Assembly: GCA_977016875.1 (NCBI GenBank)
Contig: CDRNST010000033.1
Span: forward strand, 992,001-1,056,000
Direction: 5' to 3'
From: Pavona decussata
Lineage: Eukaryota
Length of the DNA: 64,000 nt
Under the pieces are notes generated by a model that did not search any database, was not told the DNA's origin, and saw only the letters and a list, made by a program, of their open reading frames with translations. The translations under genes were made by a program, and so were the position numbers. This document shows, one piece after another, positions 1,489 to 15,566 of the stretch. The stretch's first letter is position 1. Each line of letters begins with the position of its first letter.

Positions 1489-3811
1489 CAGATTAAGCTA
1501 TGATCGTAGCCATGTTTCGCTAATATTTATTTACTTGAGTAGGATCGAATATGAGTAGTGGTGCTAATTGGTTGTAACTGTTTGTTGTTGGTTTTTACTG
1601 TTTTGTACTTTGATAATTCACATCGAACCATGTTTTTATTGCATCCCATTTATCAATTTCAGAACTATTGGAGTTAATATTTCCAATCTGACTCAAGTAA
1701 AAGACAGAAGGAAAGCTGCATCCAATCAGGTCCACAATGGGAAGAGATACATGTACCAGAAGGTGTGACTCCTCAAACTTCACCGTGTGAAAACATACAT
1801 GTACCAAAAAAAAGATGTGGTTTGTTCTTTGTCGACACCTGCTGGCACACCATCAACACCAGGATAGGCCAGAGCTATGAGCTGCAAAGGCTGCCAGTAC
1901 AAGAGCAAGCTGAGTAATGTGCAGAGGGTAAAACAAGGGGTTCAAGGAAAAACTGGCCACCTTGAAGAAAACTGTATGATTTTAAATGTATTACCTTATA
2001 AAAGTTGGCAATTTCTAAGGATCCCTGAATACCATCGTCTTTCAATATTAAAGCTTGCCTCTTAGTTATCACAACTTTTGATTACAATAAGCACAGGTGT
2101 AGCGTTATGGCAAATATAAGTTTTTGTCTATAAAGATTGGCATTCCAATTTTTAAATTAGTTCCATCCTTATAATACCTTCTGATACACAAACTGTAGAA
2201 GAACCAGATCTCCATTTAAACCAGCTACGCTGAACTGGAATTTCTAAATAAATAAATAAATAAATAAATAAACCAGCTGAACAAGCCAGCAAAGGTCTTA
2301 TTGAAGACCAAAGTGTTTCTCAGCATACTATACGTGGTCGTATGTTTCATTTGCAGAAACAGAAAATGATGGTATCAGCAAAGACGGTGATTAGGCTCCA
2401 GGACAGAATGGAATGGATGACACTACTGAGGACGAGGACAACAACACTAAAGATGAAAATGACATCAAGCCTTGTTACCTGGGGAATTATGTACATGTGT
2501 CCATATTAATTTGTGGATATTTCAAAAAGCCTGTGATTTACTTTTTTCCTTCAGAGTTAATTTGAATGGCCCTGCCTTTGCACACAAACAGCCCAAGCTC
2601 ATCATGACCTATGAGATATTCTTGAAGACTTTTGGTTGCTTTGTTTTCATTGCTATCCTGATAACCACGTGTCCATGAGGCAAACTGGCACAATGGTGAA
2701 GACAGAAACGCACTAAGTGAATATTAGGGTATGCCTACTCACAAACGTTCATGCCTCATGGAAAATATTCAGTCTGAAATGCACTTTTAAACTTTGCAGC
2801 ATTGAAAAGTGGTGCTTTAATAAGTACGACGTTGCTAGTATCGCACCACATGCAGTTGTTTAGTCTACGTGTGCCTTCTTTACAAATCAGTGGTCAGTTG
2901 TGTTCTCAACTGTTATCCATCATAGGGAGTTATACAAAGCAGCCTGTATTAAAAAAGTAACAAGTATGTGGGCTGTGGACTGGTAAGGTGACAGACACTT
3001 GACAACTCAATGAGACATTCTACTAAATGTAGACTCTACACAATTTTGTATACAACTATAGTGAAAGTTGTGCATTTTATTGCTGTCAAGTGAACAGCTG
3101 TTGTCGCTGATGCATACATTGTCAGAGATTCTCCAGCGGACATATATTTTATCAGCCATCAGTAAGGGTGGGCATGTATTTCTTGTCCACTGACCAAAGT
3201 GACAGACCAAAGCAAGAAAAGGCCTTCACGGCGATATTATAAACAATAATCCTTCATCACAAGAATTTTTTTGGGCAAACAAAGAGCACAAAAGGTGCCA
3301 GGTTCTGTGGTGTATATGGGTTCTGTACTTTGGAACTTTATGACCAGGAAATATAAATGACCTGGTGCTCAAATTTGAGATATTTCTAATGATTTCTGCC
3401 CTAGTATCACATCAGCTTCAACTTCTTGTTGTAGACTTGAAGAATTTTTATACTTTTCATAGACCTTGTTTTTTTTTATAAATTTTAGTTTTAAATTGCT
3501 GTTTACTTTTTATTGTCTTGTAAAAGGCTCCCATTTCCATCATTTTACCTTGATTTGTTAAGAATGTGGTTTTAGTCTCATGATCTACAGGCTTTTAGGG
3601 ACTGGTCATAAAGTACAGGGGGGGGGTGGGCTGGAAAAAAAGGGGGGGTGGGTCACTGTTTTCATGCATGTAAAAAGGGGTGGGCTAGCAAAAACCATGC
3701 ATCATTAAAGGGGTGGGGCACATAATATTTTTGCACATGTTTTGCATCAAATGGTGCCTTTTGCCAGTAAAACTGTGAAATGTATTAACAGTAAAAGCAC
3801 AAATTATAATT

Positions 3812-3989
3812 GTGTAGTTTCAGAAAATATCCATCCCCCATCACAGAGGGAATTTATAAAAGGACGCCCTGGAACTTCCAAGTTTCTTTCATACAATCTC
3901 TGTAATTTTGTTCTTTCTCTTACCACCATCCCCTCCAGAATCTTGAATTCCCTCCATGGGTGGGGTAAGGATATTTTCTGGAACTACAC
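3812..3989. mobile_element. MITE inside the Zator-like element
   Basis: TIR GTGTAGTT(T/C)CAGAAAATATCC at both ends; ATT on both flanks. Confidence 0.75.
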
Positions 3990-4219
3990 ATTCTATCAAG
4001 AAAAGGGCAAGTTCACTCGCATCCATTAAAATGAACAACTATGATTCCATGTGGTTATTAATGATACATATTAGATGCACATTATCTTCTCAAAATCATT
4101 TCAGGTATTTCAACAAAAATAGATCTCATGCAATGATAAACTTCAAAAACAAGACTTTGTACAATATTTTCAACTAGAGTCAACAGTCCACTTTGAAAGC
4201 TATTGTGCATGCATGATCT

Positions 4220-6041
4220 TTACAAACATAGGACATCATCAGCACTTTCATTCCCATCCATTTCATATTCATCATCTCCATCAGAACTGGTGTCACTGTC
4301 AGACAATGGTAATGATCCTGTAGGAATCATGATCAGTGACTGTATCACAGAAACAGCACTCTTGGTAAACATCTTTCTCTCTATCAACATTTTTAGCCAC
4401 TTCATATCACTTGTTTTAAGGCTTGATATACCAGTAGAGTTGAGGTTTGAGGCATTGGCTGTGTTTCCATAGCCACACGTTCCCTCCAGTGAATTATTAA
4501 TTACCACTAAATCATAGACCCTTTTGCAGTTTTTTTCATGGCGATCATGTTTCCTTTTTTTGCTTTTGGCCTTGTTCTCTTTCTGCCTTCTCTTTCGGGA
4601 CGTTTGGGCCTGTTTGACTTCTGGATACATTCTCCGGTGTTTCTCATGCATACATTTTGTAGTGGAAAGGGCACTTTCAATGCGGTCTGTTATGCTTTGT
4701 AGTCTTCCAAAGCATTCTTCGTTGAACTTGTGTGCACAAGTTTGAGTAGATTTTATTTTACCAGATTTAGTAAAACAGCTATCATCACCCACTTTTAATT
4801 CTGCCCTAATCTTATTGGTTTTATCCTTTAGACCTTCCAACTGTGTACTTCTGTAATTTATTCCTGTGAGGTCAGTAGGCATCAAAGGCTCTTTCAATGG
4901 TTGTTCAAAAGATGCAACCCTTTCTTCCAAAGTATTTAGTTCTGTATGAAGGTCATATTCCCTTCTTCCCTCTGAATGGAAGACCTTTGAAAAATCTCTT
5001 GCACTGTGGGAGAATTTCCATTGGCTCTTGTACAATGAAGGAAGAACTTTCTCATTAAGAAACTTTGCTCTTTCAGTTTTTGGATGGGGTATATAGCCAA
5101 ACTTCTTATCCTGCCATGGAGTCTTGTTTTCTTTGGGAGGCATCAACAGGGCTGTCAGGTCATTATTCTTGCTGCCTCCAACTTGGTCTTTTTGAGGCTT
5201 GTCTTTTCCATAAAGTCTCTGAAGTCTTCTTATCTGAACAGCAGTTAATCCTATGAAAAATATTCAATTGAAATGTTACAACATTGAAATAAAACTCTCT
5301 ATATATTTAGGAAGGTTTTAAGAGATTTTTATAGACTACAAATACTTCACAGACCATCTTTTTCTGAGTGTAATTCATTTATCTGGAATATGTATACATA
5401 ATATTTAATTATGCTGCAGCAGCTAGTAAGCTGACCATTCACATTTAAGTATAGCAATTAATGGGAAACCTCTGTGGATTAAAATTATAGATGGTTATTT
5501 ATATAAGGCAATTTAATATCCAACATACCTATTGTTGCTAAATCCTCAGCAGTTACATCTGTCAGGTGGCTAATCTTTTCGACGCCTTCAGCTAGAAATT
5601 TTGCTTCAAAGAAACTTAAATCAGACAGGGCCAGAAAAATTCCAATCTCTTCAGAACCACTATATAAAGCATCTGTGTTTGCTACTCTATTGTGCAAGGA
5701 CTCAACCTTCTTCCACTCTCTATCGAATCGTCTTGCCTGTATTTCTGTCAGTCCTATAAAAATAGAAACATGTTTACTATAAATAGTGTATGAATAACTG
5801 TTGGAAAGAATAATAATTCATCAGGAATCTGAATGAATCGGAATGAACGAGTAAAGAAATTCAATTTGTGCTCACCTATTTTCTTCAGATCCACATTTGT
5901 CACATCTCTAATATGCTCAACTTTGGTTATTCCCTCGCTTTGGAATGCAGCTTCAAATTGATGCAAGTCAGCAATGATGAGAAAGCTTTTAATGCTTGCA
6001 TTCTTTTCGACAAAATCGTCATCGAGAGATACGTCCGCCAT
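4220..6041 (-). CDS. Transposon-borne tandem SAM-domain protein, 3 exons (6041-5876, 5753-5529, 5250-4220), 473 aa
   Basis: AAAATGGCG start; GT-AG introns keep the frame (166+225+1031=1422 nt); two SAM-like repeats (FLIIADLHQFEAAFQSEGITKVEHIRDVTNVDLKKIG|LTEIQARRF and FLALSDLSFFEAKFLAEGVEKISHLTDVTAEDLATIG|LTAVQIRRL); basic NLS-like segment and acidic tail. Confidence 0.8.
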
Positions 6042-6115
6042 TTTGAATTTTGAGAGTGCTTCAAAATCGCCCCAGACCCCGGCGATTTTGAAGCGCTCTC
6101 TGTGCATTATGGGAT

Positions 6116-9100
6116 ATGTCGAACAATATGGCTGGAAAAGAGAAGCCATCTTGTGAAAGGTTGGCAGTTTTTGGCAAAAAAGAACAACGAGCATGCTCCA
6201 GAGTTTCGACTGGGTCTTGGAAATCCCTTCAGACGTGTAATGTGAACGAAAATGAGGAAAAACTTGAAGGTTTGCTTGCATATTACAGACAACAAAAAGC
6301 CGCACACAAAGCGCTAGTTGCAGAGGCCAATCTATATGTTCTACGCCAGCTTTTGGCTGCAAGTTCTGATGAAGACTCGCGTGGACGAGGATTCCTACAA
6401 TTTGATGAGGCCTATGGATTGTACAGTAGCTTTTTCGAAAAACCGGTAGAGAAAGCAGAATTCCGCGATCATCTGCTGGATAAGGTTCATGGACTTCGAG
6501 TGTTTGTTGCTACCGTTCAAGGAACAAGGTAAGTCTTGACACTGTTCATCTATAATACTCCCTCTGTAATGCATTTTTGGAATGTTGGAAAGATCTAGCA
6601 AAGCGAGTCCCAGTCTTGGTTGTGCTTGAAGGAACTCTTCCTTCAGTGTATCCTAGATTTTAAGATTCTGTCACGTTTTTCTTCTGTACATGTTCTATTT
6701 AACTTACACTAATATGAAGAATCCAAGTCTCGCCGAGCCTCCGAGCAGTATTTTTAATCCGAGTGCGAGTCAAGCCTCACTCAAATTTTAAGCTGTACGC
6801 TGCTTTGAGACACCATTCTATGCCCCTCAGAGTGGTTTGGGAGTTTCAGAGGGCTTGTTTTGAGTATAAATGCTCCTATCAATGTTCAAAATTTTCTTCA
6901 TCATTTTAAATTAATGCTATAAAATTATTGTGTTAAAAAACACTAAAATTTTGTTGCCAGATATGTCATACTGGAAAATGACTTCACGTGTATTGGATGG
7001 TTGCTGAAAGACTTCGAAAATTCAGCCAAAGAAGAGTCAGACAATGTGCGGTACGAACTCACTGCTGCCAATTTAAAAACCATCATAGCTTCTATGGACA
7101 CCGAATATGACAAAAATGCACTCAAGGCTGTTATATTTGCAACCAGAAGCCGCAGTGAAGTTCAAGCTTTAGGAATAAAAGCTGACAGAGCAGTAAATTT
7201 TTTGCGAAACACAATTAATGCTGCTGAAGAATGGGAGAATACTATGATGGCAGCGGAGGACATGATTGAGCTGCGCCTAAAAGAGAAAAATGATGCTGTT
7301 GAAACAAAAATACATCAAATAGATGAAAAGATCGCCAAACTAGGAGACTTTTTGCCACAAAGTAGGAGAGATGACCTGGAAACTGAAAAGGAAATGCTAA
7401 CGGAACGTGCAGCAAATATAGCGCGTCTTCAAACCAAGCAGGATGCTACAAGCAAGAAGCGCTTTCAACAGTGCAAACGGAGATTAGCTGTACAGCTCAT
7501 TGATGATAATCGGGTGAAGAGACGTAAAACCTGTTCAGGGGCACCACGGTTGCTGGACAGTGAAGATGAAGAATTTATCCAAAAAGCAGTTGAAGATAAA
7601 AGCACAGCCCATGGTCGTCGACACGATTCAACTCTTTACTCAAACCACCGAGTAAAGAAGAAGGACTTCCTTACAATTGCAAGATATAATTTGTATAGGA
7701 GAGGAAAGAAACTGATCAAAAGTGCGACGACAGTGCTCAATAGAGGTCGACCAAGAAATATATCTTCCAAAGCTGCGAAGGCACACCTGGGGAAATGGTT
7801 ATTCTGTGCCAAGAAGCCACCCAAAACAGAGCAGGAAGCAAATGAGTGTACGCATCATCAGCGTAAGCATGTAAAGAATGTCAAGCTTTCTGTATTTGAG
7901 CAAGGTAGAGAGAAAGAAGGTCTCATTTTGTCCATGGATGACAAAGCCTACCTCCGTCCTGGGACTGACGTGGGGATGCGAAATGTAAAGGCAGGCAAAA
8001 TCTATGATGTTGTTGATGAAGACAAGCAAAGAAAGCTGCCCCAACATGATTTTAGCAACCCACAAATTCATGTTACCCCATCTTCATTTCGCTTTATGAC
8101 TGCACACAAGGAAGACATTAATGGGAAGACACACGTTGTGAATGATGTTGATCAGACAGTTGTAATGAACAGACCAAAGTACTACATCGGTAGTAATGGA
8201 AGTGTGTGGGGATCTGATACCATGTTTTTACGATGGGAACTTCCCCAACTTTTTGAAGTTCAAGATGGTCCTTTATACAGATATTGTAGTTTACCACTTA
8301 GACAGTTTTGCGCCCGAGTCCATGACTGCGCCTATTATTTTGAAGACACTACAATGCATGAAGACGTGATGTCATGCACTGAAAGCCCAGACTGCAAATT
8401 CCGAGCCTATGAAGAATCTCGTCTGACATGGTTGAAACAACAGTTACTGGCTGCACAACAAAAGTGGGATGAAGACAAGGTTTTAATTGAGGGAGAAGAT
8501 GTTGCCCTAGGCAATGAAGTCAAAGACACCGTGACTACAGTTACAGACACATTAGATGAGATTGGGGATATCTCTTCTGATACCAAGGAAAAAATATGGG
8601 ACAATTGTGTCACTGTGCTGGGAAAACTTAATGGAACGCAAGAATGTATCAAGAGATTAAATCTTCCACCAGTTAAGCCAGATATGCTAAAGGCAACCGA
8701 CGCAGGTCCTGGTGTGGGATGTTCAAACATTGAAGTTAAGTTCAGAGATGCCGAAATGGCAAGAGTTCTGAACTTTGATCGTCTAAACAGAGTCCACAGG
8801 GCGCGGAATGACAGTGGGCAAAACGAGTCAGAAAGATCTAATGCTTGTATCGGGGAAGCTCTTGTCGACGGTGCTTCCTTACAGTGGAACTATTATGGAC
8901 CCCTTGACAACCTGGATGAGGATGAGATCAAGAAGCTCTCCGTTGAAGATGTCAAGCAGCTAGAAGAAGACGCAATGCAGAAAAACGCTTGGTGTGTAGC
9001 CAAAGATGTCACTGAAAGGATACAGGATGAGCCTGGTCCAGCCGGAGATTTTATGAAGGCCTTTGTGACACCAAGAGAAAGTGAGCAGTTTTTCTTCAAT

Positions 9101-10102
9101 GGTAAAGAACTCAGGGAGTTTACATCAGCAACTGAATCAAAACAGAAGGATGTTCCAGGACATGCATACTTCCAGAAAATCGAAACATTTTTAAAACAGC
9201 ATGTCCAAGTTGGTGAACTCTACCTAGAATTCCTAAAAGGTGATTGTAAACAGACCAGTGGCAAGCTCTGTGACTTCTGCACTAAATATCCATCTTTTCG
9301 TGAAAACTTACAGCGGGTACCAAGGCCAAAGCCTGATGTAACAGCCCTACCAGAGCTAAAGTACTTACCACGTGACAAAACACCAAACACGACAACAGAT
9401 GGACACCAAAGGCCCGTTGATGATTTCCAACCGAGAGCTCAGATAAAGAAGCACGTGGAAGAAGGAACACTAACACTGACAGACAGTGAATCGATTACGT
9501 CATTTTCTAAAGCATTTGCTGTAGAGGAGGACCTTGTAAGAAACTATCTCGAGCATCTACAGTATCTTAATCTAAAGAAATTGAAACGCATAGATGACAG
9601 GAAAAAGAAGAAACAAGCTGAATCTCAAATGACATACAACGACTATGACTGGGAAGACATGTTTAAGAAAGGGACACTGAAGAAGAAAACAGTGCCAGTC
9701 TTGGATCTCTTTCTACAAAAACACCAGCTGCGAACGAATCGAAAAATGAAAAAGGGTGAGAAGCTAATGGTAATTAATGCTTGGTTTGCGAAATCCCAAC
9801 TCGAAAAAATTGGAGAAGGAGAAGACAGTGATAAAGTGGACAATGAGATCGACGAAGAAGACGTGGAGGAGGAAGAAGACGATGGAGAAGAGAGCGAGTA
9901 CAACGATGCTGATGACAATGAACTTGCTTCTGATAGTGAAGATGACAACTCTGATGTAGTTCTGCAAGAAATTGGCTATTCCAGTGATGAGGATGAGCAG
10001 ACAGACGATGAAACGGAAGGGGAGACAGAACACCTTAGAACAAGAGCCGGGAGACCTGCAACAACCTACCGATCGAGACAATTTTTTGGAGACTCCGACT
10101 GA
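6116..10102 (+). CDS. Zator-like DD(D/E) transposase, 2 exons (6116-6528, 6961-10102), 1184 aa (alternative ATG at 6128)
   Basis: AG|GTAAGT donor and TTGCCAG| acceptor join the 138-aa and 1033-aa ORFs in frame; ILSMDDKAYLRPG, ATDAGPG and SGQNESERSNA match the Zator catalytic blocks; C-terminal SAP-like motif. Confidence 0.82.
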
Positions 10103-10699
10103 CTGTTACTCAAACTGAGGTGCGTTGTACATTATATCATTGCCAATGCCTTATGTTATCACCTTATAAAATACCATAGTGACTAATAAGTGCATGTGTG
10201 CTCCTTCCTCTATCATACTTGTCCTCTAATTTGTCTAGTTTTATGTATAGTCTTACCTTTATTTACTAGGGGTGGGTCATTTCATTTTTTACCTGAAAAA
10301 TATGGGTGGGCCATGCATTATTCTGCAAAAATATGAGGGTGGGTCACACAAAACTAGCCTTCGTAAAAATGAATTTTTCCAGCCCACCCCCCCCGGTACT
10401 TTATGACCAGTCCCTTAGAATTGATATATTTCCATAATACACATTTAATGTTATAAAGTAAGACAGTGTAAAGTGCTTGCACTGAGGGTTGACGCCAAGT
10501 ACCAATATTTACACTTTGTGTGCAAATGGCAAGTTTTGTTTCTTCGAGAAATACGTCATTTTCTTAAACTTCTTTCTGAGTTTGCATATTTAAAAACTCC
10601 CTGTTTCTCGATTCTTGATCCTCAATTCTCGTGCCTTAAAACCCTAACAATACGAGACGAATTGCCTGTGGCCTTCCTTCATATAGCTCGTACTGTTCA

Positions 10700-13888: not shown

Positions 13889-15566
13889 GTGACCGTACAC
13901 GGGAAAACGTACTTTAACGCTTATCCGTTAAACGGACAAAACCGTTAACCATCCGTTAGCTGCCCGTTAGAAAGCTCTTTCAAAAGCGTTAGAGGCGTTA
14001 ACAAAACCGTTAGCTTTAAACGTTTAGCGTTAGAACGAAAAGTTTACCCGTTAGCCGAAGTTCTGTATCCGTTAGCCGTTAGAATTAGAGCGTTAGAGCG
14101 GACAGCGTAGGCGTTAATACAAAATTTGTATCCGTTAGAACGCCTTGCAGAGGCGTTAGAAAAAATTACCTTCCGTTAAACGGGTAAATCAACTGTTTAC
14201 TATCTGCCGTTAGAATTGCGTGAGAAATAGCCATGTTTCGGTCAGAAGTTTCACTGCTCCGTACGTAAAGAAAGATTTTGCCGAAGCGACCTTTTTAGGT
14301 CATGAAGCAGACGAGCGAGCGAAATTCTCATTTGCAGGCGTATCCTAAACAAATTCGTTATAACTTCTGCGAAAGAAACTGACCATGAGCGAGCGACATA
14401 GTCGCAAGAGGGAAAAAGACGAATCGAATGATTTTATTGTACGTCTAGCGAAAGTTTTGACGATTGGTTTGTGCTGTTGACTGATAATGTTGTTTATGTC
14501 GTAATTCAAGTGGTAAGTCTTTGTCGCGTCAGGTCGCGACTTTGATTTCTGATTTCGTGTGCTCTTTCGAGCGGAAAGTTGTTTACATAAATATGTCCAG
14601 CACGAACGCTTTTTGCTATCAAGTGGTTGTTGTCTTGTATTAGGTTTAAGCTTTCATGGCGATAAAACCTCTTTAGCTTGATGACATCCTGAAATTGGCA
14701 TCGGAATAAATTATTCTGATATTGAACAGGAATTAAGCCGTCAAACGCTCCTCGGTGAAATCATTTGACATCCATGACTAAATAAAATAAAATTTTAAAC
14801 ATTACTTTCATTCAAGTCTTTTATATTTCTGATGGCAGTATAAACGAAGCAAGCAGAGCGTGTGAATGCGCAAGTTCACGTCAACTCCGTCGTAAACAAA
14901 ATGCAAAATAATGTTGACGCCAAAAATAGACGTGGCAAGAAATTGTGCGAACAGTTTGTTTTCATTTTGCGCTCGTTGACTATGTTTACATGAAAATATT
15001 TCAAGCTTTTATGCCTATACCGATCCGGCCATTTCGCTCCACGACAACCTAAAAATTAATTTGCTTCAGACTTTATTCAGATCTTGTCAAACGCTCCTCG
15101 GTGAAAACATTTGACCTTCGCGACTATGTAAAATGAAATTTACATTTTCATGTGTGGTTTTTTATACTTCACATCGTGCAACGTGATTGTGAGATATTCA
15201 GCAGTTCGTGAAAATCTTGTCGGTACACTAGACTGTATCTACCGCTTCTAACGCTCATGCAAGTCGTTAATGTAAGCGTTAGATTTTTTTCTCGGCCGTT
15301 TAACGGCTCCAGCTAAGCGTTAGAACAGGTTGCGTAAGCGTTAGAAAGTTTTCATGAGCCGTTAGACAGAATTAGTTAGGCGTTAGAGCGTTAGGGTTAA
15401 ACGTTAAAACGCTCAAATGATCCGTTTGCCATGACCAGTTTGCCGTTAGACCGTTAGGACAAACCGTTAGAACGCTTTCAAGGCCGTTAACTACCCGTTA
15501 ACTACCCGTTAGTTTTTAGCTGTTTAACGGATAAGCGTTAAAGTACGTTTTCCCGTGTACGGTCAC
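13889..15566. mobile_element. Non-autonomous TIR element, copy 1 (4-bp TSD, possibly Sola-type)
   Basis: TIR GTGACCGTACACGGGAAAACGTACTTTAACGCTTATCCGTTAAAC; ATTT TSD; dense CGTTA(G/A) arrays. Confidence 0.9.

Follow-up and report, generated by a model that had tools for sequence, protein, structure and literature searches.

The question raised by a 64,000-nucleotide stretch of the Pavona decussata genome (assembly GCA_977016875.1, contig CDRNST010000033.1, positions 992,001 to 1,056,000; hereafter the window) was whether a transposon found there carries its second gene as a component of its own or as a passenger. The transposon spans 3598-10414 of the window (6,817 bp), and its terminal inverted repeats (TIRs) enclose two intact divergent genes, one coding for a transposase and the other for a protein with SAM domains, hereafter the partner. 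A first reading made from the letters alone (the sequence-only reading) had proposed a Zator-like element of a two-component lineage. This lineage was strongly supported: the partner was present beside every relative with readable flanks, in several phyla, and was enclosed by TIRs at four further loci. As a whole, the locus is probably the single master copy of a very recently active DDE family belonging to an old two-gene clade, with a diverged transposase of the TP36/ISAzo13-Zator branch and a partner that we infer to be a cofactor.

Pairing of transposase and partner across loci

At least eight other lineages in the Pavona genome had a partner homologue next to a transposase that had diverged to 35-45% identity. 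The two genes were arranged head-to-head in pairs C251, C382, C239, C6, C65/C30 and C10, and tail-to-tail in C289. A multi-copy family of the same genome encompassed at least five intact copies about 99% identical to each other; its left TIR, in which TAA is followed by GGGACCGGTCAT, was found by walking upstream, and inside it lay an intact partner core of 349 codons, together with a SAM encoded by a single exon (SAM_TNK, 37.4 bits).

Outside the Pavona genome, the pairing was found at 10 loci (two coral or coral-like contigs, two loci in Ptychodera, three in Branchiostoma, one each in Mytilus and a loach, and a metagenome contig). The coral contig from Logan displayed the same layout as the window, and in an ENA coral assembly the genes were head-to-head, the partner having a SAM exon. 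Two families of Ptychodera flava were head-to-head, one of them with 43-nt TIRs opening with GGGACTGGACAT around both genes (12.1 kb), and the mussel Mytilus edulis harbored a head-to-head pair within perfect 42-nt TIRs opening with GGGACCGGTCA (10.9 kb). Two families of Branchiostoma floridae, at three loci, were tail-to-tail, with TIRs opening with GGGACTGTACG, a TTA target site duplication (TSD) and a length of 9.8 kb. In the loach Paramisgurnus, the transposase and an unannotated partner open reading frame (ORF) stood side by side, tail-to-tail, and a JGI metagenome contig encoded an intronless pair with a tandem SAM. TIRs around the partner were thus verified at four loci besides the window, including three outside the Pavona genome (Ptychodera, Branchiostoma and Mytilus). 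Gene order varied between hosts, from head-to-head to tail-to-tail.

Because the pair is shared by corals, acorn worms, lancelets and mussels, in all of which it is enclosed by TIRs, and by a fish, the second gene is, as judged from sequence comparison, an old and integral part of the element in a pan-metazoan clade; wherever element ends were readable, it lay within the same TIRs as the transposase. The sequence-only reading had also named outcomes that would speak for a one-off capture, such as family copies lacking the SAM gene; among those that could be tested, none occurred, the partner recurring beside diverged transposases across phyla.

Layout and recent activity of the window element

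The TIR arms of the window element are 41 and 42 nt long; apart from one mismatch and a 1-nt indel in a G-run, they match throughout. Both arms open with GGGACTGGTCATAAAGTAC, followed by the G-run and GTGGGCTGG. The left arm (3598-3638, + strand) opens with GGGACTGGTCAT ahead of the G-run and GTGGGCTGG, and its terminal motif is also kept in the Ptychodera, Branchiostoma and Mytilus elements; the right arm lies at 10374-10414 (- strand). The element is flanked by TTA on both sides (3595-3597 and 10415-10417). The near-perfect 41-bp TIRs and the exact TTA duplication first reported for this locus were thereby confirmed, as were the two uninterrupted, spliced and divergent ORFs, of 1,184 and 473 codons with canonical GT..AG introns.

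The transposase gene is free of stops over its 1,184 codons. Its first exon (6116-6528, + strand; 137 codons and 2 nt) has homologous N-termini in paralogues, and its second exon (6961-10102, + strand) carries the candidate catalytic residues, a predicted four-helix insertion and a C-terminal Cys/His cluster; the intron in between (6529-6960) reads GTAAGT..CAG. The partner gene is encoded on the - strand in three exons (473 codons). Exon 1 (6041-5876) contains the start codon and most of SAM-1, exon 2 (5753-5529) the end of SAM-1 and most of SAM-2, and exon 3 (5250-4220) the last helix of SAM-2, the helical core, a basic stretch, a small C-terminal helical region, an acidic tail and the stop. 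Both partner introns are of the GT..AG type in phase 1, and each cuts a SAM domain ahead of its last helix. The intron at 5251-5528 was skipped exactly by one contig of a public run, which is weak evidence (a single contig with a 25-nt side).

The start codons of the two genes are 74 bp apart, and most of this gap is filled by a palindrome (6052-6100; 20-bp arms, 95% complementary, 9-nt spacer) which may serve both genes as a bidirectional promoter or regulatory site. In other lineages, 0.3-1.6 kb separate the two genes.

Both element ends harbor arrays of short subterminal repeats resembling GGGTGGGYCA. Four of them occur at the left end (3626, 3646, 3677 and 3711) and three, in + orientation, at the right end (10270, 10304 and 10337), with a spacing of about 33 bp. 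The exact motif matched four times in the window, always within the element ends, for an expectation of 0.07. Similar arrays were present in the element ends of Ptychodera and Branchiostoma. The TIR itself aside, the subterminal repeats (3626-3720 and 10270-10346) were all oriented + at both ends, likewise in the Ptychodera element; because they share this one orientation, the two element ends are non-equivalent.

The coding part of the element was single-copy in the 602-Mb assembly, where the next best transposase match was 40% identical. Copies of the 163-bp left end with 99-100% identity were scored at no fewer than 40 places in the same genome (127 candidates). Nine of these left-end copies were fetched, and all were internal-deletion derivatives, 98.0-100% identical to the window copy. 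Eight of the nine were 792-797 bp long, joining element positions 1-563 to 6593-6817; the ninth (716 bp) had other breakpoints. The common non-autonomous form of about 793 bp therefore keeps a left segment (3598-4160) and a right segment (10190-10414), along with the subterminal repeats in them. Each of the nine derivatives was bounded by a 3-bp TSD in a different flank (TTA or TAA in eight, TCA in one), so that, together with the window copy, T(T/A/C)A duplications of 3 bp were found at 10 of 10 insertions. The recurrence of the left end at such identity, along with the own 3-bp TSD of each of the nine derivatives, is far beyond chance.

The window element is probably the single autonomous (master) copy, and its derivatives, similar to miniature inverted-repeat transposable elements (MITEs), appear to have been mobilised in trans very recently, as they are near-identical to the master copy and carry clean 3-bp TSDs. 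The recent activity suspected by the sequence-only reading was borne out in this way by the near-identical derivatives (left end at 99-100% identity in at least 40 places). A domesticated host gene pair was ruled out by the TIRs, the TSDs, the MITE-like derivatives and the multi-copy paralogues. Further deletion forms were recovered from public data. One, in a run from the same organism, lacked 4817-6591 and stood at about half depth; another, from another sample, joined 5204 to 9108 with an 8-nt filler, 5205-9107 being lost. In a public run labelled as a different organism, pieces spread along the element showed just 4 differences over about 5.9 kb, so that the source is a close relative or a mislabelled sample, or else horizontal transfer has been recent.

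Family assignment of the transposase

A word-indexed search retrieved 70 relatives of the transposase (34-94% identity), all unnamed or mis-named, from stony corals, one octocoral, Ptychodera flava, Branchiostoma floridae, Mytilus and the loach Paramisgurnus. Alignments of 18 and of 42 sequences displayed the invariant motifs S-x-DDK, T-D-x-GPGVG and D-S-x3-E-x-E-R-x-N, as well as the C-terminal Cys/His cluster. The candidate catalytic residues D326/D327 (7937-7942), D580 (8699-8701) and E624 (8831-8833) were invariant in both alignments. The AlphaFold (AF2) model of the transposase core (predicted local distance difference test, pLDDT, 88; predicted template modelling score, pTM, 0.89) displayed an RNase H fold, on which these residues are predicted to form a DDE catalytic triad. 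In the model, a four-helix bundle of about 130 residues sits between the first and second Asp of this fold.

Foldseek returned no significant match to the transposase model in the PDB. With an exhaustive structure aligner, the best RNase H folds were Metnase (Z 8.7, 175 residues) and Mos1 (Z 8.4 and 8.2), retroviral integrases ranking below; the Metnase and Mos1 alignments covered 170-183 residues at 6-11% sequence identity. These two were accordingly the best matches to the core among solved structures, although mariner elements differ from the window element by their TA target, 2-bp instead of 3-bp TSD, and lack of both a helical insertion and a partner gene. Among named entries of the ESM Atlas, the nearest structures outside the own family were ISAzo13/PF07592 clusters (template modelling score, TM, 0.79; 220 residues; root-mean-square deviation 3.2), to which a language-model lead pointed too.

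Searching the genome with PF07592 revealed, at a sub-threshold score, a family of short transposases (about 450 residues), several public relatives of which carry precomputed PF07592 matches. Profile-profile comparison by hhalign linked the long clade of the window to this PF07592-bearing family over the first catalytic half (E 3.4e-6 to 3.6e-7, probability 88-93%). The second half was collinear, with D and E in register, DxGP falling on DGGP and NEAER on NPIE(R/H). The DDK, DxGP and NxxE(R/H) motifs are common to the window clade and the PF07592-bearing eukaryotic family. The TSDs agreed with the 3 bp described for Zator at the window copy (TTA), in nine of nine derivatives and at the Branchiostoma element (TTA).

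These comparisons indirectly support the placement of the transposase as a strongly diverged, long and insertion-bearing member of the TP36/ISAzo13-Zator branch, in the IS630-Tc1-mariner group. The Zator-like call of the sequence-only reading was therefore upheld by indirect means: T(T/A/C)A TSDs at 10 of 10 insertions, invariant DDK, DxGP and NxxE(R/H), an hhalign E-value of 3.6e-7 and a TM of 0.79 to the PF07592 clusters. The search of both proteins with hidden Markov models (HMMs) that it had suggested gave a SAM match on the partner but no Pfam or NCBIfam match on the transposase. Several points tell against this placement. No Pfam or NCBIfam model, PF07592 included, matched any of 18 family members directly, so that the link to Zator and TP36 rests on profile-profile and structure comparison; the second half taken alone was weak in hhalign (E 0.028); and the assignment was made through the PF07592-bearing family and structures, rather than against reference Zator or Repbase/Dfam sequences.

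The clade could instead be a separate, unnamed superfamily-level lineage of the IS630-Tc1-mariner/TP36 assemblage, alike to Zator only through the shared ancestry of the RNase H core. The absence of a direct PF07592 or ISAzo13 HMM match would fit such a lineage, as would the insertion of about 130 residues, the long N- and C-terminal extensions and the partner gene, when set against the PF07592-bearing family of about 450 residues, and an hhalign probability of 88-93%, short of 100%. However, both catalytic halves aligned collinearly with D and E in register, the named structure matches were PF07592 clusters, the TSDs fitted Zator descriptions in length and sequence, and superfamily borders are conventional. 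This alternative was considered unlikely, although far from negligible, and placement within the TP36/ISAzo13-Zator branch was retained.

The Zator superfamily reportedly goes back to Bao et al. 2009. Published accounts present Zator as a superfamily that encodes only a transposase, has TP36 as a relative and lacks a Pfam model. Zator and the bacterial TP36/ISAzo13 (PF07592) share with the window element 3-bp TSDs, TIRs and a DDE RNase H transposase near IS630-Tc1-mariner. The window transposase is nonetheless about 2.5 times longer, with the four-helix insertion, N- and C-terminal extensions and a conserved second gene. A literature search found nothing on a SAM-containing second ORF in DNA transposons, nor on the DAGPG motif, and no Zator sequences were found in the supplements of PMC7386202. 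Existing lancelet or Hydra Zator entries in Repbase/Dfam may already include such copies.

Two copies of the short PF07592-like family were located on contig C175 (2103346-2106537 and 2235860-2239051), 99.6% identical, in opposite orientation and 130 kb apart. This family, which carries the motifs DGGPDW and YNPIEH, probably represents a canonical TP36-like/Zator element; its 3.2-kb loci showed no partner gene, within flanks too short to decide. The Ptychodera copy was flanked by a 7-bp direct repeat, TTACCAG (2337-2343 and 14493-14499 of its locus), and not by TTA only; this may be a coincidence, the duplication may be atypical, or the left junction may carry 4 additional bases.

Intron content of the transposase gene ranged from about 10 introns in Ptychodera and Branchiostoma to one in the coral element and zero in the metagenome contig; the loach gene spanned 6.8 kb. 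In public annotation, a Paramuricea relative was named 'RNA-directed DNA polymerase from transposon X-element', one from Stylophora 'Transient receptor potential cation channel subfamily A member 1', and a Ptychodera partner 'probable ATP-dependent helicase PF08_0048'. These labels probably stem from mis-annotation or from gene models fused to neighbouring genes.

Architecture and role of the partner

The partner of the window was searched as single exons. Exon 1 matched SAM_TNK at 26.6 bits (curated cut-off 25); as introns split each of the SAM domains, exon 2 fell short of the cut-off (16.9 bits, E 0.0066). The exons matched only SAM families in the Pfam scan. SAM domains were found above Pfam cut-offs in five more partners, and unsplit or longer SAMs reached 37.4, 33.1 and 31.7 bits with SAM_TNK, 23.9 bits with SAM_2, and 40.6 bits with SAM_1, in two stretches.

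Conservation among partners extended over a block of the form PW..KFG.IP...T.RA.F.N..LP.FY......F.K.FH.EGRR.YD, followed by long helices that include a D..LF.K.GK.K.G..C.H.FN motif, then by a Lys/Arg-rich stretch of about 25 residues, a small helical region and an acidic tail. The helical core (about 220 residues, coiled-coil-like) was modelled as antiparallel long helices with a pLDDT of 84.6. N-terminal heads on this core differed between lineages. Two SAMs were found in the window element, its close relative and the JGI metagenome contig, and one SAM in Ptychodera and several lineages of the Pavona genome. One partner representative had two B-boxes instead (55 bits, N-terminal zinc fingers), and a Cys-rich head, C-x4-C-x-C...C-x2-C-x-C-PP-x2-H, was shared by Branchiostoma and one lineage of the Pavona genome. 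The domain scan recognised nothing in the other heads. The SAM partner proposed by the sequence-only reading was therefore real for the window, but the conserved part is the helical core, of which SAM is one of several swappable heads.

SAM and B-box are both self-association modules; that such heads were exchanged repeatedly while the core stayed constant suggests selection for oligomerisation. A PHD finger (PF00628, E about 1e-8) formed the C-terminal end of one transposase relative. With this finger on one transposase and two B-boxes on one partner, accessory chromatin or assembly modules appear to have been shuffled on both proteins of the clade. An exhaustive profile search with the partner core gave 838 clusters (50% identity) at E<=0.001, none longer than about 460 residues, and hence no sign of a host-gene source. 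Origin of the partner by duplication of the helical insertion of the transposase was ruled out, hhalign giving no meaningful match between the two proteins.

Known two-protein systems offered points of comparison. PIF/Harbinger elements share 3-bp TWA duplications, two integral genes and MITE-like derivatives mobilised in trans, and their Myb/SANT-like partner mediates nuclear import and end binding. The window transposase, however, has neither DDE_Tnp_4 nor any other transposase Pfam match, its fold being nearest to mariner and ISAzo13, and its partner carries SAM, B-box or Cys-rich modules on a helical core instead of a Myb/SANT domain. Membership in PIF/Harbinger failed on both counts, an IS5-like DDE_Tnp_4 transposase and a Myb/SANT partner being absent. 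En/Spm (CACTA) elements share subterminal arrays of short repeats at both ends and a second protein; there, TNPA binds the subterminal repeats and pairs the ends, and TNPD is the transposase. This is a functional analogy only, since the transposase families are unrelated, the termini read GGGAC and not CACTA, and the proteins come from separate divergent genes and not from alternative splicing; DNA binding by the window partner is only proposed.

By analogy with these systems, the partner may be a transposition cofactor acting in the nucleus on the element ends, a proposal made tentatively, with a chance close to even. Scaffolding of the transpososome, chromatin targeting and interference with host SAM polymers were the possible roles named by the sequence-only reading. 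It would enter the nucleus through its basic Lys/Arg-rich stretch, oligomerise through its N-terminal head module, and help either to load and assemble the transposase on the GGGTGGGYCA subterminal repeats or to pair both ends. Deletion derivatives, keeping only the ends, would be mobilised in trans, and integration would make the 3-bp T(T/A/C)A duplications.

Several observations weigh against the cofactor role and the old pairing behind it. A 7-kb metagenome contig with a long-type transposase showed no partner within flanks of only 1.6-1.9 kb. The partner core resembled only generic antiparallel helical bundles (nothing significant in the PDB by Foldseek; CorA and spectrin-like repeats by VIA-align) and no DNA-binding domain could be recognised in it. 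When transposase residues 1-720 were modelled in complex with partner-core residues 35-310, the score was 0.00, which gives no verdict either way. Expression evidence consists of one spliced contig, and a requirement for the partner in transposition is entirely our inference.

A partner working as a regulator or host-interaction factor was the main alternative, judged rather improbable; it would either repress copy number or be directed at chromatin or silencing, its oligomerising head and acidic tail acting on host proteins such as SAM polymers or histones. SAM and B-box heads are typical assembly modules of chromatin and signalling proteins, which such a factor would explain, together with the acidic tail and basic stretch, the lack of a DNA-binding fold in Foldseek and VIA-align, and the lack of a predicted transposase interface, though the complex prediction gave no verdict; PHD fingers on some transposase relatives also suggest that chromatin matters to the clade. 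Yet strict co-inheritance across phyla and rearrangements fits a propagation function, and the subterminal arrays call for an end-binding or end-pairing factor, although a regulator is compatible with both. That the SAM gene is a captured host gene, a passenger of this one element, is highly improbable: DNA transposons do pick up pieces of their hosts, in which SAM domains are widespread, and the tandem SAM arrangement is lineage-specific, but one-off capture is contradicted by a partner core recurring beside 35-45%-identical transposases in at least eight other Pavona lineages and in outside phyla, enclosed by TIRs at three outside loci, by 838 diverged clusters, none fused to larger host proteins, and by intact ORFs.

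The cofactor role thus remained the preferred one. In its strongest form, it would make the element an obligate two-protein, pan-metazoan Zator/TP36-like system, previously undescribed, with a new protein family (a core with a swappable oligomerisation head) required to pair or load the ends, and with a window copy that is currently active; this was held possible, at somewhat less than an even chance.

Two-protein cut-and-paste transposons are few (Harbinger, En/Spm, MuDR, and ProtoRAG/Transib with a RAG2-like gene). Those known have revealed transpososome assembly, import or regulation, and some yielded paired domesticated host genes. The element described here adds a new transposase-partner pair, kept together in cnidarians, hemichordates, cephalochordates, a vertebrate and molluscs. 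Annotation is concerned as well, since no Pfam model covers either protein and public genomes list both as 'uncharacterized' or under a wrong name. The swaps of the partner head amount to a natural experiment pointing to self-association as the selected property. The window copy looks functional from its sequence: it is the single master copy, its ORFs are intact, and its dozens of derivatives are 98-100% identical and have clean TSDs. The role of the partner can therefore be tested directly with this very sequence. The family is also a candidate genetic tool, and an active master copy, if true, could be converted into a two-component system for gene transfer.

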